Origin: Chara braunii
Taxonomy: Eukaryota > Plantae > Charophyceae
Length of the DNA stretch: 63,038 nucleotides
Direction of reading: 5' to 3'
NCBI GenBank assembly: GCA_003427395.1
Contig: BFEA01000034.1
Coordinates: forward strand, 2,065,089-2,128,126
Shown here: positions 14,327 to 63,038 of the stretch, one piece after another
Layout of the letters: each line of letters opens with the position of its first letter
How positions within the stretch are numbered: the stretch's first letter is position 1
Notes under the pieces: generated by a model
Database searches by the model: none
Seen by the model: only the letters and a program-made list of their open reading frames with translations
What the model was told of the DNA's origin: nothing
Position numbers and translations under genes: made by a program

Positions 14327-15349
14327 ATGTGGCAATCCGAGGTCATAGAGGTGTACAAGGTTGATCGTGCGTGGGAGATAGAGCCCCCAAAGCTCGTAGC
14401 TGGGGGCCTAGTAGAGTTTACACTTCCTGAACGGCCCACTGATTGACACGACAGGCAGTCCCGGTGGAGGTCTGTTTTTTTATCCTCTGATGCTTGGCTG
14501 TGGACACACAGCGAGCACCTTAGAGGAGAGAGGGGAGGTATGACAGGCGGACTAGTGAGGGTCTACTTGTACTTAGGGGAGGAGGAGGCCAAAGAGGCCG
14601 CCTTGAGTCTCGTGACCTGGGGGACCAGTTCGATTATTGGTAGAGCCCTACGGTACTTACAGGAGGAGGTTGATGTTTTTCGGGAAGACGAAGAGCCTAT
14701 TGACCTTGTTTCACGGGCGACCTCCCCTTTCTATCACGGGCAATCTCTTGATAGCACCAAACACTTTCTTCCCGCATTCAGGGACCGGTTGGAGAGCAGT
14801 TCTCCCCAGTTTCATGGCAGACACAGTCTTCGGAGGGATATGAGGTTTAGTTGAGGCTTACCTCGCATTCAAAGAGCTTGAGCTCTTTGTCAGACGGAGT
14901 CTCGACGCTTCCTACATATACTACTCCCTCGCGGCGTCAGGCCTTCGCTGGGGAGATGAGAGGGTTCAACTGATAGAGTTGATCCGCTCCTTAGGGGACG
15001 ATTGCCAGAGGGGAGTGCCGCCGCCCTCGTACGTGTGGGACGTATTGGATCGGGGGCTTCGAGATGGGCCTGAGTACTTTACTTATATAGGCAGATTTTT
15101 CTCGGAGGGCTGGGCAGCTGGTGGAGTGAGAACGCTGGACCTCTCATATGTGATTACCAGTTGTCACGATATTATCGGGCGATAGGGCTCCCCCCGTACC
15201 GCATAGAGGACGAGGCGGACGAGAACGGGTGGATTAGAGAGGACGAAGAGGAGGCCTGGGAGCCAGATTGGATTGACTCCGAGAGCGAGGAGGAGATTGA
15301 CGTCACTGACGCTCACTTTCCTAGGATAGGAGTCGTCGTCAGGACATAG
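14327..15349 (+). pseudogene. Accessory ORF family 1, copy a (unknown function; stop codon and frameshifts)
   Basis: MWQSEVIEVYKVDRAWEIEPPKLVAGGLVEFTLPERP..QSRWRSVFLSSDAWLW aligns with copy b (EFDLPTR..QSRWRSTLLEPDVHLW). Distal QLIELIRSL aligns with QLVEFIRAL. Acidic tail. Confidence 0.7.
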
Positions 15350-15493: not shown

Positions 15494-16372
15494 ATGATAG
15501 AGCAGGTCGACAGAGTTGAGCTCCAGATGGGCAGTGCTAGATGGCCTTGGCCTCCTGAGACCGTGGCGCCCAACATACTAGAGTTTGATCTACCGACCAG
15601 GAGTGTGGTCGGACGCGGATATGGACTTCAGAGCCGGTGGAGATCGACATTGTTGGAGCCCGACGTGCACTTGTGGTCCTATGCGGTTGAGACCTTCAAG
15701 TCGGACAACCAGCAGTGGCGGGTGTCTGGTACGATGAGCGTGGAGGTCATAGGACATATTTATTACTCACGCACGATAGAGGCGACGGTCCATTATGAGG
15801 GGCTAGTCTATGATCACCGGCGAGGTGAGCACGGGGGGAGGACCATCCTGTGGGGGACTGTCAAGAGCGTTCGCAGGAAGGCCGAGGACTTGTATGGCCC
15901 AGTTAGGGTAGTGAGGACGACCCTCCGGATCGGAGGGGCCTTTCCATTTCCTAGTGTGCGACGGCGAGTGAGGGTCTCGACATTTGTTGCAGAGGAGCTC
16001 TAGGGTCTGGCCCGTATTTCCGAGACTTATCATGCTAACCTCGAGTTGGATGGGTTGAGGAGAGGGCTAGCGGACCGAGATTGGATTAGCGCCCAATTCA
16101 TCGCAAGGCCTTTTGTTGGGAAAAGGGGGCTCCAGCTTGTAGAGTTCATACGAGCTTTGGCACCTGCCGGAGACCCTGAGTCTTTCTTTTCCTACCAGCC
16201 TCCGGAGTTCTGGTTAGCCCTGGAGAGAGAGACCCAGAGACCTACAGATTATCTAGAGGGCGTAGGCCGACTCCTGAGTGAGGCAGCCGAGGACAGGCCT
16301 GCCCTGCTCATTTCGATCTGGGAGGTTGAGGAACACTATCAGCGGGAGGACCTTGTAGTGGTACGCCGATGA
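15494..16372 (+). pseudogene. Accessory ORF family 1, copy b (one internal TAG at 16001-16003)
   Basis: ORFs 15467-16003 and 16046-16372 are in the same frame and share motifs with the other copies. Confidence 0.75.
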
Positions 16373-16668
16373 TAGGGAGGCCTTCGACGATATAGAGCCT
16401 TGGGGGGATCAGGACCAGGGCTGGGGAGATTTGGCGATTGACATCGGAGAGGCGGTGGAGCAGGGCCGCGTAGGTGGAGAGGCGCAGCCGGAGGACGGTT
16501 GGAGACGCCTCCTTCGGGCCGAGGGACAGGAGGCTATCCCTTGGGGACGCGAGATAGATGGGGATGGAGACGCGAACATGGATTATTGACCGAAGATTGT
16601 GAGCGTATGCGAGCTGGAAGGAGAGAGTTAGAGAAGATGCTAGGGGTTATAGATGGGACGGCATGTGA

Positions 16669-17135: not shown

Positions 17136-17160
17136 CACTTGCTTTGATGAGGCGGATAAC

Positions 17161-17919
17161 GTGATGAGGAGTGATGCAGATGTATGGTTGACATACGTTT
17201 TGACACGTGATTCAGATTTCGATAGAGCGAGAAAGCTGATAGCGCCAAGAGAGACGGGTGTGGGTTACGATGTACCTCTTCCGGTACGCTTAGAGGAGAT
17301 AGCTAGTGTGCCGGTTCGACACTTTGGCACTTGGTTGGCTGAGGGAGTTTTCTTGTGGACGGTGATTACAGAGGATAGAGGATTCGATATTCCCCGACGA
17401 CTGGAAGGAATAGGACATCTTGTGTTTGACAAAACACGAGATATAGAGATAGGGTTGACGCCTGACGGTGTTAGCAGAGGTTGGTGGAGGTACGAAGTCT
17501 TGACGGAGTCGATAGTGAGACGACAACTGACGATTTTTGCAGGAGACAGGCCTTACACCGTCCGAGTCGAAATTGGGCCTCCGCACTTAGTCTACCATCC
17601 GGTAGAGAGCTGGAGGTTGACTCTTCCTACGTTTGTTGTGGAACAAACTTATGGGAGCATAGACTGTCTGACTAGAGCAGTAAACCACACGTTGTACGCG
17701 CTCTGGTTATGACTAGCGCCTCGATTTAGAAAGGCGTACTATGCAATCTGCGTGAGGTGGGGACCCCTAGACAAGGAAACGTTGAGAACCCTGATCGACG
17801 CTATCTACTGGATAGATTGTCTGAGGCCTGCTGATATGATCTACTATTGTCGTAGACGCGTAGGGGACAGATACCCTGGCTTGGAGGACCTGAGGTATCT
17901 GCTCGAGGACCAGCAATAG
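17161..17919 (+). pseudogene. Accessory ORF family 1, copy c (one internal TGA at 17710-17712)
   Basis: VRVEIGPPHLVYHPVESWRLTLPTFVVEQTYGSI aligns with TRVEVGGWREFKAPMTGLRCRVPRFMVDLVFGSL of element C. WGPL aligns with FGPF. Confidence 0.75.
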
Positions 17920-17924
17920 GAGAC

Positions 17925-18610: not shown

Positions 18611-18642
18611 GACGAGACACCCTTGGAAGCTCGAAATAATAT

Positions 18643-18882
18643 GTGATAGGTGTTTTGGGCTTGGAGAGAGATGGGTCCCAGATGATGGACGACCTAGAGG
18701 AGAGGAAAAAGAGAGTCGAAGATCAAATTATAGAATTAGTGGTTAATCAAGTTAAGGAATTCGGCATCAAGATTCAAGATAGTGGGCCTAACAAGGATAA
18801 GAGTGGGCTACGTAAGATAGAAGGAGCGACGAGGGCAGTAGAAAGGCTTTTCAGAAAAGATAGAGAATTCTTCGGAAGATAG
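18643..18882 (+). pseudogene. Charged, coiled-coil-like accessory ORF fragment
   Basis: 79-aa E/K/R-rich ORF inside the array. Confidence 0.35.
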
Positions 18883-19040
18883 CGTCTAGAATTTTGGGAG
18901 AGCGTCAAGAGGAGAGATCGTAGTAGTAAGGAACAGGAGGGGTCACTTGAGTTGACGGGAAGGAAAGAGGAGTTGTCAGGGGTTGTAACGTCGAAAGAAA
19001 AGACAAATGTTGAAGGAACGTCGGACAATGAAAGGAGACG

Positions 19041-19538
19041 ATGAGCTTTGAAAAATATTATATGCGCATTGTAGGAAGGTCAGATGAACCAGTCGCTTGT
19101 GTGGTGATACAATTGGTCCACCTGGACAGACTTAGCGTAATCGAAGAAGCAGAGTGTACTCGACAAGTTGTGCAGAAAGCGCGAGTGACCGGAATCTGGG
19201 TAGGAGAGGGAAGCGCGTGTCTGATCAACTACTCGCTGTGCGTGTCTCCCTTACATGAGCACCCCTTGAGTAGGGTATGGCGCGGGACTCCTAGAAAGGC
19301 TGAAAAACTCTTAAAAAGTGAGGCGGAAGTGGCTGGAGATTTAGCAAAGGTCATAGTAGAGAGTTCCGTCCTCAGAATGTTCAAAGCGCACAACCATTAC
19401 TGGAGCAAGTACCTTAAGACTTTCGCATATATTGAAGATTTTGGGGATATAGACGACTTCGAGACATTCTACGAATTCTTGGAGGATTCTACGGACAAAG
19501 TCCTGTTGGCTTTAGCGTTGATCTCGATGGAATGTTAG
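19041..19538 (+). CDS. Intact 165-aa accessory ORF, unknown function
   Basis: ATG-initiated and uninterrupted, with globular-like composition. The next ORF starts 7 nt after its stop. Confidence 0.6.
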   Translation: MSFEKYYMRIVGRSDEPVACVVIQLVHLDRLSVIEEAECTRQVVQKARVTGIWVGEGSACLINYSLCVSPLHEHPLSRVWRGTPRKAEKLLKSEAEVAGDLAKVIVESSVLRMFKAHNHYWSKYLKTFAYIEDFGDIDDFETFYEFLEDSTDKVLLALALISMEC

Positions 19539-19545
19539 GGGGTTC

Positions 19546-20060
19546 ATGGAGACAGACGAGAGATGTCACTACCGGAGGCAGAGTTAGTGCAAAGGAGACG
19601 GGGGTTTTCAGTATGGAGCGGACCTAGTAAACTTGAGCACGAGAAAGTCCTTCAAGATTTGAGCGCTATTAGCAGACGGTAAATCTTTCCTTACGAAGTA
19701 GTGAAGTATCAGGAGGCAAACAGCGGTCGGTAAAGAAATCAGTTTTATGTGATGACCGTATATTTTTCTGACTTCGGAATATACCACGTAGGTATATATT
19801 TACCTAGAGAGCGCGAGGATTTTTGTGTCTACACGAGGTGTTGGAGGATAGCCGCGTGGAAGCTGAGGGAAGAGAGAAAGAGATTAGAGGACTTGGAAAA
19901 GACTGTCGAGGTCTGCGACGACATCGCTATATTTGACGATCTGCCTAGGCCGCCGATCCCGTATAGAGGACTGGAGCAGAATGGATGGGAGCCGATAGTA
20001 GACTTCGTCAGGACAGTCAGGACGAGGAGTGAGCTCAGGAAAACGGTGAGGAACGAATAG
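19546..20060 (+). pseudogene. Accessory ORF family 2, copy b
   Basis: IFPYEVVKY..YVMTVYFSDFGIYHVGIYL..RCW..IAIFDDLPRPP. Confidence 0.75.
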
Positions 20061-20069
20061 GATGAAGGA

Positions 20070-20565
20070 ATGAGTAAAGGGAGAGTTATCTCTGATTGCG
20101 AATTGCAGGCAAGAAGAGAAAGATTTCTTGCTGGAAACAGACCATCCGAGGAGAGACTAGAAACTATCTGTGGACTTTTGAGTTCCCTAGGGAGGAGAGA
20201 AGTGATTCCATATGAGGTAGAAAGGTACGAGTTTGTGGATAGTGGATGAGAGGAGATACGACTATATGTGATGACTGTCAGGTTTTTCCATTTAGACGTG
20301 TATGATGTGAGGATCTACCTACATGTGGAGAGAGGAGTAGACCTTTGTGTACGACCGATGTTGGGAGTGCGCTGAAGAGATTGTAGAAGTCGAAAGACAT
20401 AGATTACTATCGCTAGGGAAAAACGTTAACTGGAGCACGCGGATAACGATCTTTGGAGGGTTTCCTAAACCTCCGACTCCGAGTCAAATTGCGCAAAAGA
20501 GAAACTTTGGCACGGTGATTGAACTTGCCTTAAGGCATCAGGCGTTTGATGGCAAGAGGCGGTGA
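20070..20565 (+). pseudogene. Accessory ORF family 2, copy c
   Basis: VIPYEVERY..YVMTVRFFHLDVYDVRIYL..RCW..ITIFGGFPKPP. Confidence 0.75.
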
Positions 20566-37755: not shown

Positions 37756-38603
37756 TCAAGGGGACGACGGGATAATGATCGGGGACGTAGCCCGATGCCC
37801 CGCATCGGCACGTGCTCGAACTGAGGGACGGCGGGAAGGGGAGGGGGAGCGGTTTCGTTGCCTCCGTGTCGGCGCGCTTGAAGCCTCTGCGGCGCAGCGC
37901 TCATCTTCCTTTGTCGCCGGCTCCGGATCTCTGGTCGGATCGTCTGGAATCGGCAAGGCAGTCCCCGCCACTTGCTCCAATGTCCGCTTTCCTTCCGCGA
38001 TTTCTGCCCGGCGTTGCTCGGCTTCAGCAAGGTCCTCTCCGTGTGTCCCCGCCTGTTCCGCCCCTTCTTCCTCGCTCTCGTCCTCCTCCTCTTCCTCTTC
38101 ACTTATCGCCCCTGACTCATGCTCACTGTGCTCGCTGTAATACTCGTCCTCTTCGGGGGTGTCTTCCGATTCGTCTCCCTCTTCCTCTTCTTCTTCTTCT
38201 TCCTCTTCTTCTTCTTCTTCCTCTTTTCCTTCTTCTTCTTCTGACGTCGGCTCCCCTCGATCCAAGAAAAGAAGATTAATTATCTCTGCGGGGTTTAGGT
38301 GGTTACCTTGTGACGGGTAACTACGGTTGTCCCAATCGCCGTCCAAGCACGCCGACCACTGTAGATACGGCAGCTGCTAGGAGGATTAAGAGTTCCCCCA
38401 CAATTAGCTATCGATGTCTTGGCTCCACCGATCCGAAAACGAATCCCAGTAAATCCCCTTCCACCCCCGTTCTCCACGCCTGAATAGTGAGCAACTCCAC
38501 GTCCTCGTTCGTGGCGGGGTGCTCGCTGTCTTTGGTCCAGTTCAGCCTGATCTCGACTAAACACAAAGATAGAGTCTCGGAAGTTTGCCACCACCCTTGC
38601 CAC
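37756..38603 (-). pseudogene. Acidic, poly-Glu ORF in the 3' internal region of element A
   Basis: ORFs 38295-38603 and 37756-38346, with a long E/D tract and an R/S/P-rich tail. Confidence 0.55.
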
Positions 38604-38702
38604 TGTTCGGGCTGATACGCGGATGATGAACTTTTCTGATCACCGAGATGTGTCCGCGTGGCGCTAACATCCGCTCATTGAGTACCTGTTCCGTGGAAAA
38701 AC

Positions 38703-39293
38703 TCATCGCGAAGAGGAGGGAGATGATGGAGGGGGAGAAGAATGAGACTGGGGGACGTCACTTTCCCACTCGGACTCCGATTCCGAGGGCGACCCAGTTG
38801 GAGAGGGAGGAGAAGAAACAGAGAGAGGGCGGAGATAGGACACGTGGCAGACTATGGGCCTAACTGACCGACTGCCTGCCACTTCAGGAGCAAGGTGCAT
38901 GGTGTTCACTCCGTTAGGTCCGAGCTCGATCACTCGAAAGCACCCGAAGAATCGTGGCGCTAGTTTCCCTTGACGACCACATTTCCTTACCTGCACCAAG
39001 TCCCCCAATTTATACTGGGTCGGGGGCCGGCATTCCCATTTCGGGCGACACAAGGGACATAACCAAGCCTTGTCCGCGTTCCAATACTGAATGCGGGCAC
39101 CATGGGCCCTAGAACCACAATGCCGACAATCTACCCATTCAACATATCCTTCCCCGCTAGGACGCATAGGGACTGAATAGACACTCGAGATCGCCTCACA
39201 AAAATAACAAAATTTGTGAGGCAAAGAGAAGAGAGATGAGGATGAGAGGGGAGAGAGGGGACTACCTGAATTACCTCCATCGCCCATTGTCAC
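38703..39293 (-). CDS. PHD-finger-like protein fused to a GPY/F-like (integrase C-terminal type) module
   Basis: CYFC...WVDCRHCGSRAHGAR...WLCPLC, with the Cys after His replaced by Arg, followed by YKLGDLVQV..KLAPRFFGCFRVIE. Confidence 0.65.
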   Translation of the reverse strand: MTMGDGGNSGSPLSPLSSSSLFSLPHKFCYFCEAISSVYSVPMRPSGEGYVEWVDCRHCGSRAHGARIQYWNADKAWLCPLCRPKWECRPPTQYKLGDLVQVRKCGRQGKLAPRFFGCFRVIELGPNGVNTMHLAPEVAGSRSVRPIVCHVSYLRPLSVSSPPSPTGSPSESESEWESDVPQSHSSPPPSSPSSSR

Positions 39294-39296
39294 GTG

Positions 39297-41236
39297 TCAC
39301 TTCTTAGCACGTGGAAGGATGGCCACCTGTCCGTACTGTGGCCCATTGACTGGTTCCGGTTCTTTCCACGGGATGATTTATTCTCCCTTAGTAACCTTGG
39401 TTGGTCGGTGCAGTCGTGTCAGCCCGTCCATGTTCCCGTGTTTTTCCGCCTTTCGATGGATGATGTCGAAATCGTACTCCTGTAGCCGCACTGCCCAGCG
39501 TCCAATCATGCCCGTGTAATTAGTGAGCATCTTGAGGGTCAACAGGGACTCATAATCTGTGACGAGGAGGAATCTTTGTCCATACAGATACAAATGGAAG
39601 TGTCGAATCCCCCACACCACGGCGTAGCATTCCCCTTGGGGCCCCGAGTCGTTTCTCCTTTCGTCTAGTACGGTCCGAGATGCGTACTCGATGACGTGCT
39701 CGCGGCCGATCGCTTCTCGGGGTCGGGCTGGATCAACACAAGGGTCGTGGCCAAGGCTTCCTTCAATATCGCAAAGGCCTGCTCGCACTCAGCATCCCAT
39801 CTCAACGGTTGGTCTTTTCGCAAGAGGTTCGTCAGAGGTCGTGCGATTGTCGTGAAACCCTTGAAAAATCGTCGGTAGTACGAGGCCAACCCCAAGAAGG
39901 CTCGAACTTGCGTTAGCGACGTGGGCGTCGGGGCGCCTCGAACTGTCGCGACCTTCCTCGAATCTGGTCGCAAACACCCTCGCGTCACCACGTACCCCAC
40001 GAACGAGATTTCCGACAGGAAAACCTCGCTCTTTTCCAGGGCGATCTTGAAGTCCGCGTCTCGTAGTGCTCCAAGTGTCCATTCGATGTGTTGCGCATGT
40101 CCGTGAAACGATTCCGAATACACCAGGATGCCGTCCATGTACATGATGACACATAAGTTCACCATTCCCTGCGTTAGCCGAGTCTTGTTAACAAAATTTT
40201 GAAAGGTCAAGTTCATTGCCCTTTGAAACGTAGCCAGAGCGTTGCAAATGCCCATAGGACATCGAACCCACTGCCACGTGCCTTAGAATAACACGAACGT
40301 CGTTGTCGGACGATCCTCTTCCTTCACCAATATGTGGTGGAACCCGTGGTAGATATCGAATTTACTAACGTAGTTAGCACACCCAATCACATCCAACAAA
40401 TCATCAATCCCTGGGAGGGAATATACATCTTTGATCGTGATGTCATTCAACTTCCGATAATCGATGAAAATGCGAATGGATCCGATCTTTTTAAGGACTA
40501 AAACCACGGGAAAGGAACACAGCCCGGTAGTGGGTTCGATCCAACCATTGGCCTCAAATTCTCTGATACTCTCTAGGGCGGTTCGTCTTTCGACCAACGA
40601 GTATCGGTATGGCTTACAATGAATCGGCGGGTGGGCACCAGTCTGGATCTCATGTTGTATGACCATGGATAGTCCTATGTCCGTGTCCTCTGTATTAATC
40701 GCCCTCTGATATTCGGTTAGGATGTCTGCGATGAGTCTATGTATCTCGTTCGACACATAGTCCGCCACATGCAGTTCGTAGTGGCAGTCTCGTATCACCA
40801 CCAGTAGTTGTTTGGTCCTGACCACGTGGGTCTTTCTCGTGGGTGGAGATGATATGAAGGAATGGTCGGAACACCAGGAGAAGATCGTGGCAACCATTTG
40901 AGGTTCCTCTTCTCTGACTGCCACATGTTTCTCCAGGGTGATGCCATCCTCAATATCTTGAAGGTCCACGGCCTTCTTCTCGATTTTTAGCCCAATATCG
41001 AACGGGGCAAGGTCGTACAGCCCAGGGGGTTCCGAAGTCCAGTTTTCAACGCCCCTCTGTAGCAGTCGGATTTCTTTTCCTTTGGTGAGCAACGAACTGG
41101 GAGGGATTTCTGAGAGATCGCAGAAGGACCTCTTATCCTGGTATCTGGGTAACAATGGGGTGGTCGCCTCGTACATAGTTTGAGGGGGTTCCCAAGAATC
41201 CGTCAACTGAGATATCTGGATAAGTGGTTCTCCCAT
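39297..41236 (-). pseudogene. pol: RT-RNase H of element A (frameshifts, internal RH deletion, no integrase core)
   Basis: IDYRKLNDIT, MPMGICNALATFQRAM, YMDG (for YMDD), AFLGLASYYRRF, ECYAVVWGIRHF and HGNMDGLTRL. Confidence 0.9.
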
Positions 41237-41456
41237 GATCAGCGCTCGGGTTCATTGCGCATCCCTTGTGAAAACGAAAGTTTTCGCGGTTTTCTGTCGA
41301 AGTGGGTAGCGGATTCTTTGTCGTGTTAGCTCGAGAATTTGAGGATCTGCATCGTCCTCACTCTCGAAGGTGGACGACGGTAATGTCGGATTCGACGTCG
41401 GATTCGTCCGTGGACTCCTCCCACCTTATCATTCGTAGGATTTCGCAGGGTCCCGG

Positions 41457-42248
41457 TCATTGTCGCTCAGACATCGAGGTTGTTCGGAGGGTGAGGCGCA
41501 TTGGGACGGTGTATGGCTTTCCTCCGGTGTTGTTGAGGATAATTGCTTGTCGTTCGAAATCCGGCGTGGCCTGTAAGGCTATGAGGGCTGGTAATCCGAC
41601 GAGGACATCGTATGTGGTCACGTTTAGGACCACTACGTCGCCTAAGGCGTGGACTTTACGTATTTGAAAAGCGACGTTGGACATCCTTCCTGCAACTTGA
41701 ATCTTACCTTCGTCGGCGGAAATGAAGTGATCGCCCTCCGCGAGAGGAATCACGTCTTTCCGCCGACCAGCCCGCTCGGCCACCCGTAGTGATATGGCCA
41801 GGACCGCGGCTCCGGAGTCAAGAACTGCACTATAGGGGTTTCCCCAGACTTCCACGTCACATTCCACGGATCTCCATGGCAGGGCTTTGATCCGTAGGAA
41901 GTGGTCGTCTTTCCGAATTAGACCCATCCGGACGGGTTCGGAGTTGTTTGGCTCCTCTGGCTTCGGATCTCTAACGAGAGCCTTTCCTTTTACGGTTGCC
42001 AATTTGGCGAGGGCAAATCGCTTCCGGTTTGCTTTGGAGTGTTGTAGCATCCGGTCGTTAGCCTGTTCAGAGATGGTTGGCAGGTGTCCAATGGGCAAGG
42101 GGATGTGGTGATCCAAGGCACGGACTATATCTAACACATCAATCTTTCCTGCAGCGAACGCGGCTCCTTCGGATTCCATTTCCCTTGGGGAGGGTCTCCA
42201 TTTTGAAACTTCGTTATCGTCAAGGGCAGGTTGGATGGCCCCTATCAT
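41457..42248 (-). pseudogene. Aspartic protease of element A
   Basis: AVLDSGAAVL and DVLVGLPAL. Confidence 0.85.
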
Positions 42249-42260
42249 GTCGAGGGCTGG

Positions 42261-43424
42261 TTATCCCAACGATATGTACTGGTCAAGCGGGATAAGCTTC
42301 GCCGCTTTCTCCGTGACTCCCGACAGGCTTGCCCCGTTGTCGGTTTCCTTTACCATTGTGGCCACCCGGCCAGGTTCGTCAGCAATTGGTGCCGCAACTA
42401 CTGGCGCGATTCTTGTTTGCGTGAGACGATGGGGACAGTCCTGGGCTATGTGCCCGGGCTGATGACACGTGTAACAAACACTTACGTTAGCTGCCGCGGT
42501 GCCCCCTACCGGAGCGGGGGCTGCGCCTGGCATCATTGGTGCTGCTCTGACGGCGATAGGGCGCATCGATCTCATCAATGATTCGATCCGAGCGTTGTGC
42601 TCGTGTTGTTCCTTCTTACTTTCTTGCATTAGGCTAACCACTGCTCTAGTTAGTTCTAGGATCGCGTTTGACTCATTGGACCTTGCAGGGGCTTCTTGAG
42701 TAGGCGGAGGCATAGCCACAATCAGTAACCTTGAGGGCGCGTCATGTACCAGTCTCTTGGCTGCGACCTGTTCTAGGTAGGTGACCGGACCGGAGACGAA
42801 ACCCATAGTTTCAAATTTGTTCTGGAGCGCGGCCATCTCCGAAGAGTCTCCATCTTTTGCGTGATCTTCACCTTCCAGGAAGCTAGCAGCGAATTTCCGT
42901 TCCATTTCTTCTGCCTCATCCATAATTTGTTGCATCGTGTGGTTGATGGGGGAAAACTGCTTCCGTAATTTCGCACGCATTGCCCGACTCCGAAGCCCAT
43001 CGATGAATAAATCCCTCCCAACCTTCTCGTCCCTTTCAGATTTGACAAACAGTCTATAAAATCTACTACGATATTCTGTGACAGATTCGAGGGGCTTCTG
43101 AACTCGGTCCTTGATCATAAAGAAAGCCTATTCGGGGTGGATATAATCGAACCTGTTCAAGAAGTCCCTTTCAAAGGTTGGAAGATCTATCCAAGCGTAC
43201 GTGCTAAACCAGTGATGCGCATCCCCTCCTAGTCGGGCGGGGATGTTGATCCGAACTTCATCGTTATCATATTGTTGTGCACGTAAGGTAGCTAACCATA
43301 CCCCAGCCAGATGGTGTGCCGCGTCGAAGAGAAACAAATCGGGTGGAGCCGTAGGTGCGCGAGCTTGAACGGGTGGCGCGGGAACAGGGGCCCCGCCTAG
43401 CTGTACGTTGACATTTTGCGCCTC
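42261..43424 (-). pseudogene. gag: Gag of element A (N-terminus detached)
   Basis: LGGDAHHWF..FERDFLNRF, QKPLESVTEY..F, and zinc knuckle CYTCHQPGHIAQDC. Confidence 0.88.
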
Positions 43425-44514
43425 CCAATAACCATACCGCACCTGACCCGAACCAGCGTACCGTGGTGTGCCCAAACCTGTGTACCATATCTGTTTCAAC
43501 CCAGCGTCCCGGCCTGTACCGAGCCGCCGTACCACTAGTACAGAGCACCGTACCGTGTCGATGCGCTGTGATAGTATCGAACCTGCCCCGAACCAGAGTG
43601 ACATGCTCATCCCAAACCGACGTCCATACCACCATAATAGAGTCATGCGGCCACCTTGTAGAAGTACCAATGGCAGCACCAAACCGAGAATGTTGCCGTA
43701 AACCCAAAACCCCCACCTCGCTGATCCATCCGCCGTCACCAAAGTCTGTGGAACAGGGACCTCACTTACCCAAAAGGAATACTCTAGTTGATAGGGAGGG
43801 TAATAATCAAGAATATCGGGTAATATCAGGAAAGTCAAGAAAACCAGGAAAATCAGGGAAAGTTGGCGGAACATAGGAAAATTAGCAAGAATCGGATCAA
43901 ACCAATGAAAGGGATTAAATGGGTATTTTTGACAAAAATCCATGAGAATGGAATTTCATAGACTCGAATTAAATTTAAAAAAAAATCGTTAGTTTTGTTT
44001 CTTTTTACCATTTTTAATTCTTTTCCTTATTTTTAACCCTGTCACAGGAATCGATGAAATTCGCGGATAATTTCATCAAAGAAAATTTTGACGAAATTTA
44101 ATAAAATAACGAATATTCATTTACTTTCTTTCCTTTTATTATTTTTAATTCCTTTTCTCAATTTTAAATTTGTCAGTAGAGTTAATGAAATTTTGAGGGT
44201 TCATTCCCTCACCAATTGGCTAGTGTAAAAGGGCCGCGTTGAGCCCTAGCACCACGTCCCAACTCCGCGGCCGACCGGGTCGCGAACTACCTCGAATCGA
44301 AGGAAAAAGGGTAGGCACTACCACACCTGTTCATCACTTTAATTTCAAGAGTCAGTTTCAATAGTCGACATAGAGAATATCAGGGGTCTCTTCCCGACCC
44401 CTAATTTTTTCCGACAATTCGGACGAAAGTCCCGGTCAATCCCTCTCTAGGCAGACAATCTAAGGGTTAATCCATCGGATTTCGGGTGGCCGACTGACCT
44501 TCGGGCGCCCGACA
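43423..44514 (-). mobile_element. LTR B, first ~1.1 kb only
   Basis: Reverse complement of 29035-30137. Starts TGTCGG at 44514 and is preceded on the minus strand by ACGA. Confidence 0.88.
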
Positions 44515-51683: not shown

Positions 51684-52380
51684 TAAATAATATAATAAAT
51701 AATCTTCAAATTGCAAAATCACTTTGAAAGTTAGATAGTCCGATGCAGCCCGAACGACCGAAGTGCACTGGTAACTTACCAACAGAAAGTACTAAGTCCG
51801 AATGTTTGCAAAAGCATGCTTTAGTTGTCGCCTATGTGAGTATCCCAAGTCCTTTTTACTACTTGGTGCACTGCGCTTAGACTGTTATCACGCCGTTATT
51901 ACCAAACAGTGAACTGAGCATACCTCTTCCGATGTCAGCAGCAAAACCAAAGTTCATGCATATTCCAGCCATGCTGACCATGTACCTTGCATCCCCATCT
52001 CCCTCTTCTACGTTTTCCTTTTCTTTCCCTCTCACTTTGCTAGTCTGTCTGTTTTCGTCGCTGCCAGTTATGTCCGCCTGTGTGTGTATCTGTTTGGTTA
52101 CCTGTGTCAGGCCGTCCGCCGGCTTGTCTGTGACCGATTGTCTGTTTTTGTTTTGCCTGCTTGCATCTGTCTGTGTTTTTCTTGTCTTTTGGTTATTTAT
52201 ATATTGTTGTCTGTCTGCTTTTGTCTGCCTATCTGGCTGATTGTGTTTGATGGCTCTTCTGTCCTACTGTGTCTGTTGGAGCATCTGCTCATTGGTTTTG
52301 CATCTCACCTTGTGTAATTGTTTGTGTCTGTCTTTTGTTTATTATGCATAGTTACCTCTGTTTGTATATAAGGGCTTACA
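51145..52380. mobile_element. Putative ~1.2 kb LTR of another family, or the 3' LTR of element C
   Basis: TGTAAG...CTTACA inverted termini, adjacent to the point where element C pol is truncated. No target duplication or second copy in the window. Confidence 0.4.
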
Positions 52381-52394
52381 CCCTAGACCAGACC

Positions 52395-52764
52395 ATTTTT
52401 CATTCCAGCATTCATGCTCTACCGTGTGGATCCTAACCGGAGGAACTAGCTTTGCGTCCAACCGCCCTTTCTGGTGATCATTGAAAACGAAAGCTAAATG
52501 GAACTCCTGACACGCCTTCCTTATCAACTGAGTTTCCTCTGCTGTTAGAAACCCTTCCACTCCTATTTTCATGATATCTGCTACCTCATCTGGTATGCGA
52601 TGCCCTTCCGTTGCCCGCCTCTCCCTTATAATCCGTAGGATCTCTTCTTCTTTTTCCATGGCCTCTTCCCTTGATGTTTCTACTAGGATCGAGACTGGCT
52701 TGGCCTTCTTCCCTACGGGTTTGTATTTTTGCATACTCCCTTCTGGGATCGTTCTCCTAAAAAA
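52395..52764 (-). pseudogene. pol: N-terminal stub of element C pol (pre-RT region), truncated
   Basis: YKPVGKKAKPV..GRLDAKLVPPVRIHTVEHECWN is homologous to element B HKTVAQKVKTV..GRIDPRYAKPGRIYTIPHTPWN. Confidence 0.85.
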
Positions 52765-55700
52765 TGAACGGTCGGGATTGGCCTTGCCACCTCCCATTGA
52801 GGCAGTAGCCTTTCTAGATTTCTTCTTCAAATCTTGCAAGTGTTATCGGATCTACCCCAACTTTATGGTATCTAATAGCTTTGATGAGTTGCAGCAAGTC
52901 AGGGATTTCGAGTACTACTTCTGTCGTTTCCTTCCGTCTCTCCTTTGGCTTGGGGAGGCTGGCCCCAAGTTCAATCTCCGACTCCTTTTCTGCGAGCATG
53001 ACTCCTAGGACCTCGCCCTTCTGTCTCCTTTTCTTTAGAGGCAAACCCATTTTGATCCATTCTTTTTTGCTAAACGTCTCATCAATCATAATTTCTACCC
53101 TTTCCCTCATGCCTTCCATTCGTGCGAATGCGCCTTTCCGTGCACTTTCTTCAAACGTCGGCGACCAGGTTGCCAGCTTACCCTTGGGGGGATCCCCTCC
53201 AGTTCCGAGGAGTCGGAGGATTTGTCCGCGACCAGTTACAGGATCCTCTATGTCTACCATATACGTGCCATCATGCAGGTGCATGCCAATCATTTCTACA
53301 TTGGCGCACCAAGGTCTTCCAAGGATTATGTCATGGTCCATTTCTTCCATGACGGTCATCCGTTGAAAAGACCAGATGGATTCCCGAATTCCTGCCCTGA
53401 CCTCACATTTGGTGACATACCCAGTGAAGGGAATTTCTCCGTCCGCTCCCCTGATACTCCCTGCTACCTCCTTGTTCACTGTGCACCCCGTGATCGTTGC
53501 GAAATCCCGTCGCATGAGGGTAATTTTTGCGCCGCCATCCACTAATGCATCGGTGTGGTGAGTTCCGACCTGGACTTTAAGTTTTCCTNCAGGCAGTGCG
53601 TGGAAGCTAAGTTTAGTGCCGGGCAGTGCTCTCATTACTTCGCCACCTTCTCGGTCCAGCAGATTCAGACGAATATCGGCAAAGGCTTTTTCCAAGTCTT
53701 CCAGGCCCCCTGGAATGCTTTGGAGGTTAGAGACTACTTGTGGCGCCTCGACCTCCTCGGGTCCTTGTTCCTGTGGTTCCAGAGCCTCCTCTACTTCTAC
53801 ATGTTTACTCGTCAATAGCTGCCTGAGGCCCTTGAGCAGTCTCGGGCTTGCCTGCAGCATGGTCTGGAAGGATACTGACACCATGGCGCCCAGGAGTTTG
53901 CTCAGAGTGTCATCTAATTCGGGCAGTGTCAGAATCGGGATCTGGTACCTGAACTTCTTCTTTGCCGCCGTGGCTTTATCTACCAGTTCCTCTTCCCTCG
54001 TTTTTCCATAAACCTTCTCATGTTCCCCGGCCTCAGCTTCCTCCTGATCTGCTCTAGCCCCCGCGACTTCTTCCATTACTGTGTCTCGGATGAACTTCTT
54101 TTCCGCGCCAGCCCGTTGGGTAGTAATGTTTACCCTATCCTGCCCATTACTTTCCAGGATGAAGTTGACCTGGGGCCCGCGCCCCCTTGGTTGGTCCCAG
54201 ACAAGCTCAACTACCGGCTCTGCTTCTACGACAACTATATCCAAGTTATTCAGGAGGATGACGACACGCCGCATTCCTCCTGGCGAATTCCAGTTTACGC
54301 GCTCTCCCTGAGGTCCAAGAATCTCACCTTTGAGTGACCTACTGCACCTCTGTCTAATGATGTCGTGGTTAAGTCTCGGGCAGGTCCTTATGAAATGCCC
54401 GACCATTGTACAATATTTGCATTGTTCATTGGCCAGGTCCCTTCTGGGGAAACCTCGATTGGCTACAGCTGCCAGTATTACGGCTTTTTGGGGCGGGAGG
54501 GGGGGTCTGGACACCTGTGCCTGCATTACTAATAGCGCATTTTCCATTATGTCCATCTTGCTGTCAACCCCGTGCACCTTTCATGCAGACTCTTTATTCC
54601 CTTTTTGACCTTATCCCCCGTTTTCCCGGTCAGGTCTATAACCTCCCCTTCCTTAAGCAGAGTCAGGGTCTCAGTTACCACTATCTTCTCTGCAAGATCT
54701 GTTACCATACTGAAATCCACATCCCTTGTGTATTCAAACTTGCTGGTGTGCTGGTATGCTGACAGAATCTTATCCTTATCAAACTCGGAGAACTGCCTGA
54801 GGAAGTATTTACTCATTATGCGGTCCGTTACCCCGGGAATTCGCAGCGCCACTAACGTAAACGCCCTTAGGAAATCGTTGTAAGTCGCATAGTTTTTTCT
54901 CTGGACTGCTGCTAATTCGGCCTCTGTTGCCATTTTCTCTGCCTTCAAATATTTCCTCATCATCTCGTTCCTGGTTTCTTTCCAGGATCCACTGGACGCG
55001 ACGATGACCATAATGTCCCTTCCCAAGCTTAGTGACACGTGCTGCCCTAGGTGCTCCATCTTTTCCTCTTCCGTCCATTTTAGTAAGGCTGCTAGGTTCT
55101 CATAGTCTATCAGAAACTCCGTAACGTTTGCCCCATCGAACGTGAGTTTCTTCTTTGCATCTGCGAGATATCCCTGGTTCTTGTTTAGTGCCCGGGTGAG
55201 GGTGGTGACTATCCTCTTGAGACCACCTTCGGAGCTACCCACTTCTCTTGCTGCACTGGTCCCTTCCCCTTCCTTGCTTTCCCTCTACTTCTCCCTGGTT
55301 TCCGGCGTTCCTTCTGGGTCAAACCATCCTAGCACCCTTTCCCTAAGGCTCCAGAGTCCGTTGCACGCCCCTGTTACTTTCGGCGTGGCTGGCAGTCAGC
55401 TAGTGCCGTTGTCAATGGCAGGCAGGGTCATAGCGTTTTCCGTCCCCTCCGCCGGGGGGTCGTTCTTGTCCTTCCCCTTCTTGCTAGGCGTTCCTTTGTG
55501 GCTATTATCCTTTCCCTCATACCTGGCCTCGTCCTGACCGGTCCTGCGTCCCTTACGTGACCCTGCGCCCTGGGGGTCCTCCTCATCCTCGACCATCATC
55601 TGCTCGATAAGCCTTGCCTTAAATTCTGCAGTCCGCTTTTCTATCTCTGCCAATTTACGACTGGCATCCGAGACTTTTGTCTTTTTAGGGGTGACTCCTG

Positions 55701-55957
55701 CTGAGTTCCGAGGGCTTGTTCTCATATCGTTTCCCCCTACCCTGTTTTCCTGAGGTCCCCTTTTGCTACCCCCAACTTTCCCCGAGCTTTCTCTAGTTGA
55801 GAGGTCCTTTCCGTCTTCTCGGGTTCCTTCCAGTTTGGCTGACTCTCGATCCCCCGTTGATCCCTCGTTTCGTTCCCCATCCCCATTCGTGCCCTNATTC
55901 CCTCCGCTCTGCTGGTCATCGATCCCTTCCTCAGTCGTCATTTCTTTACCTAGCCTG
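52757..55957 (-). pseudogene. gag: Gag-protease of element C
   Basis: FDGANVTEFLIDYE, zinc knuckle CKYCTMVGHFIRTC, protease motifs ALVDGGA and IILGRPW. Contains stops and a frameshift. Confidence 0.88.
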
Positions 55958-56405
55958 CACATGGAAAAAAAAAATTTGCGAAAAAATGGCCGGTTGTTCA
56001 TAACTGCCCTAGTCCCGGCCCTAAAACCCGCCTATTCCCATGTTTTTTTTGTGTCTTACATTAATCGGTCCGACTCTCCTGGCTTTTCTTTCCCAGGGCG
56101 TCCTTCAGGTTTTCTCCCGCCGGGGGACTTGCCGCCGCTGCTTGGCATTTTATTACTGCCACGCTTTGGCTCTTAGGGCGGTGTTTGAGCCCAATGGCCT
56201 CCTTATCGAGGATGACCCTTTTGGCTTTTCGACCTTCAAATGCCCCAGAGTTTTCTAGTGCGGGTGGTCTTCCTAGTTCCTCCTTGCCGTGCTATCGGGT
56301 TGGACGGAACTCCAACCACTGCCCCCCCCCTTTTTTTTTGGTGATAGTTGCCTTCTTATCTTAGTACCCGTCCCTTATTTCCCTATCTTTTCCCGACGCG
56401 TTTTC

Positions 56406-57191
56406 TCATGCTGGTCCCTCAGGCCTGCCTTGCTCGTCCGGTTCTTCGAACAGGTCAGCCACCCCCGCAAGGTAGTTTTCTCCCATCTCTATTTCCCTGA
56501 CGATTATCGGCTCAAATTCCTCAAATGCTAAGCGAGGCAAAACGAATATCAGGATTTCAATGAGGTCAAGCAACTCTCAGGCCTGATTTCCCTAGAACGA
56601 CCCATGCTTGACCGACACGTCGTAAAACATTCCCGTCGTTTGTGGACGGAAGTGGTGGATCCAAACCAGGGTCGAATCCACCAGGTCCCTAGCTCTCTTG
56701 AGGCTACCGAATACCAAGTCCACCATGAAACGAGGTACTCGACACCTCAGCCCGGTCATTGGGGCCTTAAATTCTCGCCAGCCTCCGACCTCCACCCGAG
56801 TTCTTAATCCCACGTTTCTTCTCCCCCGCACTTCCTGGCCCACCCTGTTCAACATCCTAGTAGCCCTCTGGAAGATTGGTAGCAACCCGTGACCTAGTGC
56901 CAATTCCGTTCCTAGCATGTACCATCCAAATTCCGGCAGGTATACGGTCCCCGTCACCCTAAGATCGGTGTACAGATCGTCTCCCGGTCCCCTGTTAATC
57001 CTCATACCATCCCACAAACATTCCACCAGCATGAACGCCTGACCTCTTCCCAGGGTCACGACCCTCCATTCGATGTCCCGTCCTTGGATCATGTAGCTTG
57101 TTGGGAGCGATACCTCCCATCCGCCTCCACTTTCCGTGGGTGGCCGCGGGTGTGTGGACCGTCGCAACATCCGGGCGTGTCTCATCGCCAT
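56406..57191 (-). pseudogene. Accessory ORF family 1, element C copy 4
   Basis: RPPTESGGGWEVSLP..GTVYL..W..RVEVGGWREFKAP..VPRF. Its tail YLAGVADL matches YLEGVGRL of element B copy b. Confidence 0.75.
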
Positions 57192-57310
57192 TTTTTACTT
57201 ACTAGTCCCCTGCACAGTTTAAACAGCAAGCGGTTTTACTTATTTCATTTAATCTTCAACTCCCTCCCCGGTTTCTAGCTTGAACCTTCCTTTTCTTTCC
57301 TTGACCTCTT

Positions 57311-58084
57311 TTATTGGTCTGTCCCTACGTCCATCGGCTCATACAATCGGTACAGATCATCCACGTACACCATCCCTTGACTTATTTTCCGTCGGACGGC
57401 ACCCCACAGGACCTCACTACCCACGACCGGAGCCCTCGGCCTGGTGCTAAACACAGCACGCAAGATGCGCAACACCTCATACTTCTGCTCTCCACTGAAC
57501 GGGCCCATTTCTAGGAAGGCCCGATAGTATTCTCGATGTACCGTCGCATCTTCATATGTCAGGCTTGCGAGGTCGGCTACCGCTTATCTAACAAGTCCCA
57601 GACCGCCCAGCCTTTCCAGCAGGAAGGGCGGCAACCTCATTCGTACATTTTCACTAGGCAATTAAAAACTCCCAACTATGGCTACCCTAAGGTCCGCTGT
57701 TACATCGTCAACCCCCGGATCTGCGAACTCAAATCTCGCTCGCCATACTAACTGCCACGCCCCTTCAAACATGCTCAACGAGTCTTCTTCAGATGCCAGC
57801 CGGACTCTGAACTCCCTCCACCCATTTTCCGACACATACAGTCGTCCTTCTGCACGCACATGCCCCCGCGGGTCCGGGTTCCACTCCCCATTCTCGTCCG
57901 CACGCCATTCAACTTTCGTCACCAAGTAAACCATGTTTTCCGCAAGTTCGACTCCAACCCAATCCGCCACTTGGAGCTAGCCTCCACTCACCGCCGGCAA
58001 GCTAACCTCTATCCCACCCGGTACTTCCCTAGGCGGTTCAATGGCCAAGGGGCGTTCCTAAAGGAAGGTCATTCTTCGCGCCAT
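57311..58084 (-). pseudogene. Accessory ORF family 1, element C copy 3
   Basis: MARRMTFL*ERPLAIEPPREVPGGIEVSLP (compare IEPPKLVAGGLVEFTLP in B), GRLYV..GW, GPF..EVLRIL, YVDD. Confidence 0.75.
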
Positions 58085-58206
58085 CGCGCACTCGCCTTTG
58101 ATCTCCTGGCTCGCGATCCGCACTGAACCCTACAATGGCCAGACATCCCATTCCCTTATCTTAGCAATTTTTTCCATATTTGCATGGCCCCACGGCTTTC
58201 CTGCGC

Positions 58207-58940
58207 TTAGTCGAACCACAGTACCTCGAACAGTTTGAACACATCGTCCACATAACAGGGTGTCGCTGCCACCTCACGGCGGATTATGGCCTCCCTAGTT
58301 TTCGGGGCCACCTCCTGTCGGTCATTCCTTTCAATATCCAAAATGATAAGAACCTCCCGGGCTCTATCGCCGTGGAAGGGCCCGAATTCCAAGGACGTCT
58401 TATAGAATTCCTCTGCCAGCCATGCGCAGTTCACGTGTATTCGTTCCATCGTGTCGGCTACCTCTGTTACGTGATCAAAACGCCCAAACCAGCCTGCTAC
58501 GAACTCAGGTACCCAGATCTTGGTCCGGGTGCCAGGCGGTTTAAATTCCTTCCATCCTCCCATCCCGACTCTACTGCTGACCGTATCCCAACCTTTGTTA
58601 GCAAACCTTTCCCCCGCCTGGCGAGCCCTTGCCTCAGCGTCCCCTAAAAGCCACATCGGATTCTGTCCTGCCGTGAGCATTGTGCAGAACAGGTGCCAAC
58701 CTTGATCGTCCAGACTGATTCCACCCTTCCTTTCGCAATCTCTTCCCATTCTTCCTCTTCCCTCAACGGGTTCCAGACACGCTCTGTCCATAGGTACGAT
58801 AGCTCCGGCACAATCTCATACCCCCGACAATCACATGTGGTCCCCTTCCATTCATTGCTTGGCGGTATTGACATCTCTACTCCCCTTCCGATTCGTCCTG
58901 GTTCCCATGTGCAGTCCCATAGCTCGAGTTCCCGGACCAT
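58207..58940 (-). pseudogene. Accessory ORF family 1, element C copy 2 (one frameshift)
   Basis: GRGVEMSIP..YLW..GGISL..GW..RVGMGGWKEFKPPGT..VPEF..FGPF..EVLIIL..YVDD. Confidence 0.75.
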
Positions 58941-58956
58941 TGCTCCCTACCTGCAC

Positions 58957-59805
58957 ATAGTTGACAACCCGTTTTCCCCGGGTAAGCCCCCCCTTCAGAA
59001 GTCTCAGTCCTCTATCTCGTCCCCGCCCTCCTCCTCACTGGAATCCTTCTCCTCGTCGAAGAACATCTCTTTCACCCCTTCCAAGAAGGTTTCCCCCGCC
59101 GCCACGTTTCGGTAAACTATCTGCCAATGCACCGGACTAGGAACAAAGACTTCGTCCGCGCTGAGGAGGTTTAACACCTCAACGAATTCTTCCGCTCAGT
59201 TTCCTTCAAACGGCCCTGCTTCCACCGACAATCTAAAGAAGTCTTGTCTAGCACATTGGTACAGCCTCAGGTGTGTCATCGATTGGCATATACGTTCCAG
59301 TCTATCCCTGGTCCCAAAGACTGCATCCACTAGAAACGGGGGTACACACACCTCATTGTCCTAAGAGGACGTCTCATATTTTTCCGGTCCCTGAGTTCCA
59401 CTCGCACCTCCATCCTTTCCATCTCCATTTCTGCCCGCTGACATGCTGCCCATACCACCTCCCGTTCCGCTTGCCTAAACAGCTGATCCGGTGCCGTGCC
59501 CAATATTAGTCCCACTACCATTGCATTTTCCAATTCCTGTGATAGGTAGACCCATCCTCGAGCTTCCACTGTTCCCCGAAATTCTAGGTCCATCAAGCTA
59601 GGTGAAAGTCTCGTCAGGCTGACCTTAGTCCAGATTGTCTCTATCCAGAGGAACGCGTCCTTCTCATCCAGTATCATGGTTTCATAGACCGGTTCTAGGT
59701 CAGTCCAAACCCTTCTTCTGGGAGAACAACAGATACCCCATCCCTTACCTCTATAGGCATTTCCGGACCGCTAGAGTAGACAGGAGGCAACAACCATCGC
59801 GCCAT
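58957..59805 (-). pseudogene. Accessory ORF family 1, element C copy 1 (frameshifts)
   Basis: DGVSVVLP..AFLWIE..GWVYL..VRVEL..P..YPRF, with an acidic tail like copy a of element B. The 3' end is approximate. Confidence 0.65.
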
Positions 59806-62800
59806 CTTGTTTCCCGGCGCTTGTCCTGTTTCCACATGAGAGCACCACACGGCCCCTCATGGTCAGATGATTTTCTTTTCTTTTCTAGATGAGAGCTGTT
59901 TTCGGACCCCTCATCCGGGTCTCCCTAACTTTTCTTATCCATTTCCCATGTGCCATTGCCCTACCATACCCCCAATCGATCACCAGTGGCTCGCATTCTT
60001 TTTTCTTGGTTTCACTCCCTTCCAACTCCTATCCAGCCTCTTCCTCATGTTCTCTCACTCGTGCAGACTTAGGCAGGGGTTGAGAATAGACTACAAACTT
60101 AGTTCCCCTTCCAACACTCATCAGGCAGCTTCACAAAGAGAGGTACAAAAAGAAAAACCAAAAAGTCATCGCACACAGGCCGGTCATCTCCTCACCGGCC
60201 TTTTCCCAAAGTGGTCTCTTCGCTGTTACCATCGGCAGGGTCTTACCCCATACCTCAAGCACAACTCAACCGTCGCAAGCGCGGTATCCAGACTCCAGTG
60301 GGGGGTCACCCTCACCTTCTTGCCCAGAATACCCCATCCCGACTTGTCGCTCGTGTGCCCACCTTTAATCTCGGGAATCACCCCGCACATCTCGGTAGAC
60401 CATTGGAGCCAGCCGTCTAGGCATTCACTTCCATCGGTCCGATAAGGAACAGCCTTTCCCAAACCAGGCTACGAGAAGCTACTGATCGCCTCCCAGGCTC
60501 CGTCTTTGCCCCCATGCAGTGGTGCTCCCTCCGCCAGTCTACAGGCTAGGCCCCGCCTGAGGAACGTTTCACACCCCGCCCGGCAGATCAATCGAGCCGA
60601 AGCCCGTCACCGCGCGGACGAGAATGCTAATAAGCACTCGATGTGACAAACTCCCGTTAGACAGCTTGGTGGCCTGAGCCCCGCATACGAACAAACAACA
60701 GTCTGAAAAGAGAACGATATTTGGCAACCCGCAGTGGCCGGTGCAGACCCCCCCTTTCCTTCCAAATGACGGGACGCTCGAAATCCCAATCATGCAATTA
60801 CAAGTCCCAAATGGGACACACATAACACAAGTGCCTTTCCCCTGGTGCACCCAGCGCTTCCTACCCATAGCTCACAATTTTTCTCTCGGGACAGTGCGTG
60901 CCACTCACCCCTAACTTCCATACATAGTGCCCGGTTCCTTCTCGTGAGCATCTTCAAAGGTGAGCTAGTTTTCCTCGGAGTCTAGCAACTCCCTTCATTC
61001 CCTTATCTTCGCTTGTGTGTTCGTTCAAAGGGAAGGATTGTTCCTTCTCGATTACCCTTTGTGTTCATATGAGGTTCCTTCAAGCATTAAGTGTGGTGCA
61101 TGGAGCCCGCTGCGCTCCGGAGAAAAGGAAGGAGAGCACCCGTGTCGGTCGGATCACTCCGCCGCGGGATTTTCATCGGAACCCGGACTAGCCCGGAATC
61201 CCAATCGCCTGCTAGGTAACCGGAGCCCTTCTTTCACACGAAGAGGAAGGGTCGACCTGCGGCTTGCCCAAGGCTTCCCCGGTCTGACGAACATCAGCCC
61301 AAAAGAAGGAGGACTAGAGCCACCTCCAGGGGCGATGGCTGATCAAGCGTGCGAGCATGCATGTTATTCCTCCGGGTCTGGCCTTGCCATGCGCCCAGCC
61401 ACCCTCAAATCTGATTCACTCAAGGGATAGAGCATACATAAATCCATATTCCTTATCTTCATGTTTATGTTCACGGTCATGCGTCGGGCGCCCCCCTCGA
61501 GACCGTATGGGTCAGTTTAACCCAATACCCGGCACCTCCACCATTTTTGTAGGGGCCGTACCCTGAAGGACTTTCGAGCCTAAGTCGACCCCGCTGCGGG
61601 TCCCAGTTGGCTCGACCCGCCCACGCTCATGCTCAGGGCGCGGGTCATTCGTCCCAGGGGCACCCCCACCTAGTGCTTTGAGATGGATGGGGATGGGCCT
61701 TTTGCGAGAGGGCTTTACATTGGGGGATGTAGCTCCGCTCTCGATGGTAGCTGTTTAGGCACTCGTGGCATCTGCTTAATTCTTTCTTTTTTTTTTCGTC
61801 CGACCAGGCAATTGCTCCTTCCAATACACAGGCAGTCCGGGGAGTTCGTTGAGATTTATCTTCATTTCGCGTATAGGCCAAGCGTCATCCATTGGACCAC
61901 ACACCTTTTCACTAAGCCTAGTGACTCAAGACCGCCCTTGCAGCATCCTCGGGGTGGAGTGGCACCGCCCGGGCCCCTAGCCGATATATTTTTTTTGCTC
62001 CAGTCACTAGTATCACATTCACCTATCCAAGACCGCCCTTAGTCCTTCCGGGCGCACACCGCATTCAAGAGAGTCATTGCATTCAATCACTATGCAAGTC
62101 GCATCCGGGCATCTACCATTTATCTAGGCATCCAACCGTCAAACCCATCCCGCATTCATAATTTAGGCGAGGTCTAAGTCCTTCCCTTATCCAATTTTCC
62201 ACCCTCGCCCTCGTTTGCGGATCCGATCCCGATCAGATCGCCCTGCCCACTCACCTGCACAAGACCACACAAGACGAGAGGCCCAAGTACAATCCCCATT
62301 GGGGTCAACACATCGCCCCGTCCCACAAGCCTAAGATTCTTTTGCCCTCGACGTTCCTTAGGTTGTCTTTCCCCTTCCTTCAAGCAAAACCATGCCTTCA
62401 CCTTAGTCAAGCAGTCGGGGAGGATAGTTGAGTCCAACTGACCTTGTTACAAAAACAACACTCCTTTTCGCTTTCTCCAATGTGCACAACAGTCCAGCGC
62501 CTTTCCTTCTTGGTGGCACAAGGGACCGGCTGCCCTCCCCTTGCCCTCGCTTTCCACCAAGTGAGGATCAAGGTTCGTTACCGTTCGTCCCCTCGCAATG
62601 TCACAAGTGAGGGTAGAGGTTAGTTACTTGTCATGGAAGGGAAGGGACGAGGTGAGAGTTAAGGGTCAAGGACCATGGGAGAAAGAGAGCGGAAGGAGAG
62701 AGGAGGTGAGGGGGAGAGAGAGAAAGAGAGAGAGAGAGAAAGTGGGAGAGAGAGAGAGGGAGAAAGAGGAGAAGGAGAGGAAGGGAAGAAGAAGGGAAGC

Positions 62801-62949
62801 GAGAGAGCGGGCACGAGAGGCTCCACATCCTATTCGCCCTTGACCCTTGGCCCACCTTAACCGAGCCCTACCCGGACTCCGTGTGCTCCTTTGCACCTCC
62901 TATGACTCTCGAGTGGACGGGTATAGGTGGTGGAGCTGGAAGTAGGGTT

Positions 62950-63038
62950 GGGGTGGTCGGCTATGGTGGATGGGTGTAGGTGATGGAGGTAGAAGAAGGG
63001 TCGGGGTGGTCGGCTATGGTGGATGGGTGTAGGTGATG
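62950..63038. repeat. 53-bp tandem repeat at the window end
   Basis: ggggtggtcggctatggtggatgggtgtaggtgatg at 62950 and 63003. Confidence 0.8.

Follow-up and report, generated by a model that had tools for sequence, protein, structure and literature searches.

Our analysis concerns a 63,038-nucleotide stretch of the Chara braunii genome (the window), whose minus strand carries the 5' part of a Ty3/gypsy retrotransposon that we call element C (Table 1). Four accessory units, C4, C3, C2 and C1, lie between its leader and gag. The initial annotation had read them as four tandem paralogues 5' of gag, and at the minus-strand positions of Table 1 this is borne out: all six C-C pairs are significant, with Smith-Waterman scores of 112-191 where 300 shuffles average 33-35 (z 14-32), and with pairwise identities of 21-27%. 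The alignments identify C1-C4 as paralogues derived from ancient tandem duplications. The ordered motif string ascribed to all four turned out to be a composite, since RVE-x-GGW-x-EF occurs only in C1 and C3, and YVDD only in C2 and C3. Six-frame translation of 56200-60000 finds every unit broken, and of the C2 stops two or more occur in this copy alone; the window copy of element C is dead and decayed. We did not mend the broken units but read them with X at every stop or frameshift.

Table 1. Features of elements C and B in the window (positions count from its first base; a slash marks the candidate splice boundary)
Feature	Position	Strand	Remarks
5' LTR of element C, 3' part	61548..63038	-	runs past window end; ends in CA; matches end of L010 3' LTR
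Primer-binding site TGGTGGAG...	61526..61543	-	3-4 nt past LTR end; kept in 6 copies
Leader, ~1.7 kb	59833..61525	-	conserved, ATG-rich, without conserved ORF
Candidate splice donor in leader, AG/GTATGG	60248..60256	-	GT 60253-60252 kept in 6/6 copies; top consensus score
Candidate acceptor of C4, AAACAG/G	59826..59832	-	kept in 5/5 undisrupted copies
Accessory paralogue C4	58995..59805	-	ATG 59805, stop 58995; two frameshifts (near 59705, 59385) and stops
Candidate acceptor of C3, TGTGCAG/G	58951..58957	-	TGCAG in 6/8 copies; L001 has TTTACAG, L010 has none
Accessory paralogue C3	58207..58940	-	single frameshift near 58750
Candidate acceptor of C2, TTGTAG/G	58130..58136	-	TGYAG in 6/6 copies
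Accessory paralogue C2	57311..58084	-	four in-frame stops
Candidate acceptor of C1, TGTGCAG/G	57210..57216	-	TGYAG/G in 6/6 copies
Accessory paralogue C1	56406..57191	-	two in-frame stops
Candidate acceptor of gag, TGTGCAG/G	55955..55961	-	past a T-rich tract; YGCAG/G in 3 copies; CACAG/G in L010
gag, zinc knuckle, protease, RT start of element C	52345..55941	-	decayed, cut off; gag ATG 55941
Unit B1 of element B	14327..15110	+	homologous to C units; upstream of gag
Unit B2 of element B	15494..16369	+	homologous to C units; upstream of gag
Unit B3 of element B	17185..17916	+	homologous to C units; upstream of gag

The gag-NC-protease part of element C reaches 52814 and matches Pfam Retrotrans_gag and gag-asp_proteas with scores short of the curated cut-offs. 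Similarity to related loci stops near 52390, shortly into RT, so the window copy is truncated. Three relatives (L002, L005 and L010) go on to RT-RH-INT and, together with the gag-NC-PR-RT start of the window, they give the Ty3/gypsy order gag-PR-RT-RH-INT. L010 is a full element of ~22.4 kb, with TG..CA LTRs of ~2.9 kb that are 92-96% alike, a primer-binding site, a PPT, and all four HMM spans of the cassette without stops; of the terminal features the window shows only the 5' LTR end and the primer-binding site, which we take to be tRNA-Ala-like. The order C4-C3-C2-C1 followed by gag and/or pol recurs in L002, L005, L006, L007 and L010. Window DNA is 83-91% identical to loci of the Chara assembly, and one DNA run contributed 9,747 contigs on the window stretch, with a summed depth over the cassette similar to that over gag; such even depth fits a multicopy family in which the cassette is standard. 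We explain the element as belonging to a family of large (~22 kb) Ty3/gypsy LTR retrotransposons in Chara braunii that has a fixed four-gene accessory cassette.

Several further features of these elements deserve mention. C-type LTRs contain a 53-bp tandem array (window 62913-63038; ~40 units in L002 at 3757-6002) that is unmatched in L010. The pol of L010 has one RNase H family by Pfam; between 16240 and 20754 this locus has ~180 residues separating RNase H from the integrase zinc finger, and extra unannotated ORFs past integrase, for neither of which Pfam gave a match. Searches of L010 pol, the downstream ORFs and L008 returned no Chromo match at E<=0.05, a search that divergent chromodomains can escape. 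The PR/RT junction, CATTTTTTAG/GA at window 52736-52765, is kept in four copies (window, L002, L005 and L010) and fits a UUU-stop +1 shift, yet it resembles a splice acceptor too. The synonymous distance of the window copy from L002 runs from 0.10 in protease up to 0.81 in C3, and from L005 the distances are 0.88 for protease and 0.34-0.64 for the cassette; this mosaic of dS values suggests template-switch recombination between subfamilies. On the minus strand at window 37756-43943 lies a third gag-pol; its zf-4CXXC and SH3_Tf2-1 matches are weak, and no unit of the accessory family is nearby.

Accessory units in two element lineages

The plus strand of the window holds a second element, B, whose gag ORF lies at 20964 and whose RT is about 41-45% identical to that of C elements. 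Compared singly, B and C accessory units show weak to moderate similarity (best z 7-9), and C3 against B is not significant. At the profile level the homology is clear: hhalign of C against B gives a probability of 97.5, E 5.3e-12 and a score of 85 over 226 aligned columns, where 100 column-shuffled controls score 21.7 at most. Moreover, an HMM built from C alone recovers B1, B2 and B3 (E 1e-9 to 3e-5) and nothing else of significance in the six-frame translation of the 63 kb. The initial proposal of a tandemly amplified accessory family, held at a fixed place upstream of gag and common to two element lineages, therefore stands, as does its link to gag-pol: 41 of 45 long Chara gene models with the domain also match gag/pol, and in 39 of the 45 the gag/pol match is downstream of the domain.

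The tree built from 39 units gathers each C position into a single clade (support 92-100), and B1, B2 and B3 are likewise clades; the position labels require 4 changes, against a shuffled mean of 22. The deep order of this tree is not resolved, and it does not tell independent from shared expansion in B and C. Among B-type loci, B1-B2-B3 is found in L008 and L012, two units in L011, and a duplicated B1 in L003. L003 and L004 appear to be duplicated 21-kb loci, 61 kb apart on the same scaffold and encoding identical protein, the result of a recent duplication or an assembly artefact. We are highly confident that the cassette consists of functional, element-borne paralogues.

How widely is the family distributed? 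Single-sequence searches with C1 gave no match, and profile search alone succeeded. A profile of N-terminal pieces drew 57 proteins from 1.84 billion representatives; among the 20 checked were 18 hypothetical models of Chara braunii, one Logan contig, which carries two tandem units, and one false positive. A deeper profile returned Chara proteins only. The description of the family as lineage-wide thus holds for Chara braunii and one Logan contig, and these searches showed no wider spread. L001 (Logan ERR14794633) has an open, divergent C3-like ORF, 35-40% identical to Chara braunii members, that lies behind a C4-like tail and has its acceptors arranged in the same way; it may come from another characean species. 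Pfam, plant mobile domain included, had no match in 33 family members, nor had PHROGs or NCBIfam any for the family. Two apparent relatives were rejected: the designed Pizza beta-propellers of the PDB, whose sequence matches are summed 5-bit repeats, and the ENA match P0053, with six short stretches, to which a fuller profile gave no match. GenBank and UniProt list dozens of Chara 'hypothetical proteins' that are cassette pieces mis-joined to gag-pol, not host genes.

Constraint on the cassette

We estimated dN/dS by the Nei-Gojobori method from natural copies compared by codon, with breaks masked and dS running from 0.3 to saturation, for whole genes and in 40-codon windows over six or seven sequences. 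Between element copies C1-C4 give values of 0.06-0.26, mostly 0.10-0.15. This range overlaps those of gag (0.05-0.16), protease (0.09) and integrase (0.05-0.27), one very close pair aside. Purifying selection acts on each of C1-C4, which implies that every one of them was translated and of use to active elements.

The family had been described at the outset as fast-diversifying in a manner typical of conflict genes, and the measurements do not support this. Could the cassette nevertheless comprise arms-race genes, rapidly diversifying under positive selection? In favor of such a reading one may cite the mere 21-27% identity of the paralogues and the faster loss of amino-acid identity in C2 and C3, which retain 50-65% between distant copies, versus 83-92% for RT/RNase H. 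Against it stand the low gene-wide dN/dS, the position-specific clades and the conserved order, and the check for positive selection, at both levels and with six or seven sequences, found none: no gene or window had dN/dS above 1, and pN/pS in 40-codon windows never exceeded 0.43 (window maxima 0.29-0.43). We therefore consider an arms race improbable. The 21-27% identity reflects ancient duplication followed by conservation, with no current rapid change. A role of the cassette in host conflict is possible.

Candidate splice sites and expression

Over six copies aligned from 61900 to 59830, the leader has 51% invariant columns and 44-53 ATGs. It is strongly conserved (59833-61525) though synonymous sites are near saturation, and it has neither a conserved ORF nor an Rfam match; it is on these grounds probably a structured cis-acting RNA. 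An ATG-rich leader without a conserved ORF also argues against simple scanning, and the genomic RNA would not be scannable through this leader and four ORFs. How, then, might the downstream genes be expressed? Each ORF, like gag, has an acceptor-like motif 12-50 nt ahead of its ATG, and these motifs are kept across copies while the flanking spacers are diverged and poorly alignable. A strict TGYAG no more than 55 nt from the ATG is present for 4 of the 5 ORFs of the window element, versus 9% in the background (P about 3e-4). Polypyrimidine tracts are poor before C2-C4. The best conserved candidate donor, GT 60253-60252, sits 1.3 kb into the leader. We propose that alternative splicing, joining an upstream donor to the acceptor before the respective ATG, would place each ORF, and gag, on a subgenomic mRNA of its own, and from the arrangement of these sites we judge one spliced mRNA per ORF to be likely.

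Of two oligo-dT RNA runs, one (X5) yielded 2 reads, and the other (X6) gave even two-strand coverage by diverged reads, which resembles DNA carry-over. No spliced read was seen, which counts against the proposal, and the joints listed include no GT-AG joint. In an RNA-type run (X8) the deepest contig terminates at 57209, the base immediately past the C1 acceptor; we estimate a chance of ~5% for such a coincidence and regard it as a weak hint of C1 acceptor use. An RNA-type contig joining about 60227 to 57268 was considered as a leader-to-C1 splice, a reading that we dropped, since the junction lacks GT-AG and the filler letters carry on the leader beyond the candidate donor. We read it as a template switch or a deletion variant. 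On window 60216-57289 a contig of X8 is without C4-C2, with its join at a short microhomology, and is possibly a deletion derivative keeping only C1. Introns of the annotated gene models are inconsistent, and we did not use them as support for splicing.

Lineage B has a different arrangement. Its first ORF is preceded by a strong pyrimidine-rich acceptor (window 14327-20565; L008, L011 and L012), and one or more of the later ORFs begin within a few bases of the preceding stop (TAG-GGA-ATG). This spacing may indicate coupled translation, in which case the B and C lineages would express the family differently.

Possible functions and comparison with known systems

What might the cassette proteins do? 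An AF2 model of a family protein (pLDDT 82, pTM 0.74) predicts two parts, an alpha/beta N-domain and a helical C-domain, whose halves are not repeats of each other; three paralogues are acidic and one is basic. The family has no invariant catalytic set, its conserved columns being mostly P, G, W, L and F, and C1-C4 lack a transmembrane stretch (maximum 19-residue hydropathy 0.9-1.5). They are not env-like, with no transmembrane segment and a place upstream of gag, not after pol. Sequence and fold searches gave no match linking a family protein to any function. We dropped the idea that GW motifs serve as Argonaute hooks, as they are located in the folded part of the model.

With these properties, the products would be soluble, non-enzymatic two-part proteins acting in trans by binding host proteins; such binding would most plausibly blunt silencing or restriction, each paralogue having its own conserved partner. 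Our preferred reading, which we advance tentatively, is that the cassette proteins work in trans by attaching to conserved proteins of the host, probably to counter silencing or restriction. Positive selection, often seen in antagonists of host defence, is not seen here, and this counts against an antagonist role. We can imagine a still broader scenario, possible but doubtful, in which a charophyte Ty3/gypsy lineage independently evolved a genome like that of complex retroviruses, with at least four spliced accessory mRNAs upstream of gag, a fold absent from the libraries, and each paralogue binding its own conserved host factor of silencing or restriction; a sister lineage, B, would use closely spaced, possibly coupled ORFs for part of its expression of the family.

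The four proteins might instead be co-operating structural subunits, forming a hetero-oligomeric shell, a scaffold, or a chaperone of the particle or replication site. This would explain the fixed number and order of all four, and we think it unlikely, though it is the alternative that fares best. Transport factors, acting from cell to cell or within the cell in the manner of movement proteins, would be useful in the giant-celled Chara with its plasmodesmata; given that a transmembrane segment is absent, that the BFVD/PDB matches include no viral movement or env protein, and that gelsolin scores are at background, this is if anything less probable than an arms race. Degenerate BTB/POZ adaptors recruiting CUL3 are very improbable: the C-terminal half looks similar by eye and ESM Atlas feature matches to BTB clusters reach 0.79-0.83, but with just 64-74 shared features and at the level reached by shuffled proteins, a Pfam BTB match is absent in 33 or 24 members, no BTB chain is among the matches listed (Foldseek, VIA; whole and C-half models), and the C-half model has a pLDDT of only 69.

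Complex retroviruses of the HIV type carry several small accessory ORFs behind 3' splice acceptors. The Chara element resembles them in its small accessory ORFs, each with a 3' acceptor and a good start context and with one mRNA per gene predicted. It differs from them in that its accessory genes lie upstream of gag and are mutually paralogous, that gag also has an acceptor, that no env-like transmembrane ORF was identified, and that there is no sequence or fold similarity.

Among plant elements, transcripts of the Ogre type are reportedly spliced. Ogre-type elements have 1-2 extra ORFs of unassigned function 5' of gag, often, not universally, with the plant mobile domain PF10536 (PMC6431247; PMC6317226). 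With the Ogre/Tat/Athila (OTA) group the Chara element shares the Ty3/gypsy domain order, a size class of 16-25 kb, long LTRs and internal extra ORFs (PMC6317226; PMC6431247); unlike Ogre, it has four tandem paralogues without a Pfam match and a candidate acceptor before each. Extra ORFs are common in plant LTR retrotransposons and mostly unexplained; an element usually has one or two of them (PMC6317226, PMC7264820). The additional ORFs of PMC7264820 lie between pol and the 3' LTR, and bdelloid LTR elements carry multiple ORFs, as far as the available part of PMC5408684 describes them. Within that same scope, both sets are like the Chara ORFs in being element-specific, conserved in most copies and of obscure origin, and the Chara ORFs differ in being 5' of gag, on the sense strand and tandem paralogues.

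A plant precedent for anti-silencing by a transposon protein is VANC, a protein of the Arabidopsis VANDAL DNA transposons that binds to DNA motifs and acquires new targets in evolution (PMC5735166). Like VANC, the Chara proteins are transposon-encoded accessory proteins that diverge between families, in elements with tandem repeats in their non-coding parts (PMC5735166). Unlike VANC, three of the four are acidic, dN/dS is low and the carrier is an LTR element, and no similarity was detected.

In the literature covered, which did not extend to papers on the Chara genome or Ogre splicing, we found no paper on this family or on a tandem paralogous cassette with per-gene acceptors. Here one family of unmatched fold has been quadruplicated and shows gag-level constraint across diverged subfamilies, with a testable route of expression. 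The partners of the cassette proteins would reveal what lets a retrotransposon prosper in a genome rich in repeats, within the algae related to land plants. Since L010 and L007 contain open natural ORFs, the proteins lend themselves to expression, structure determination and pull-down in unaltered form.
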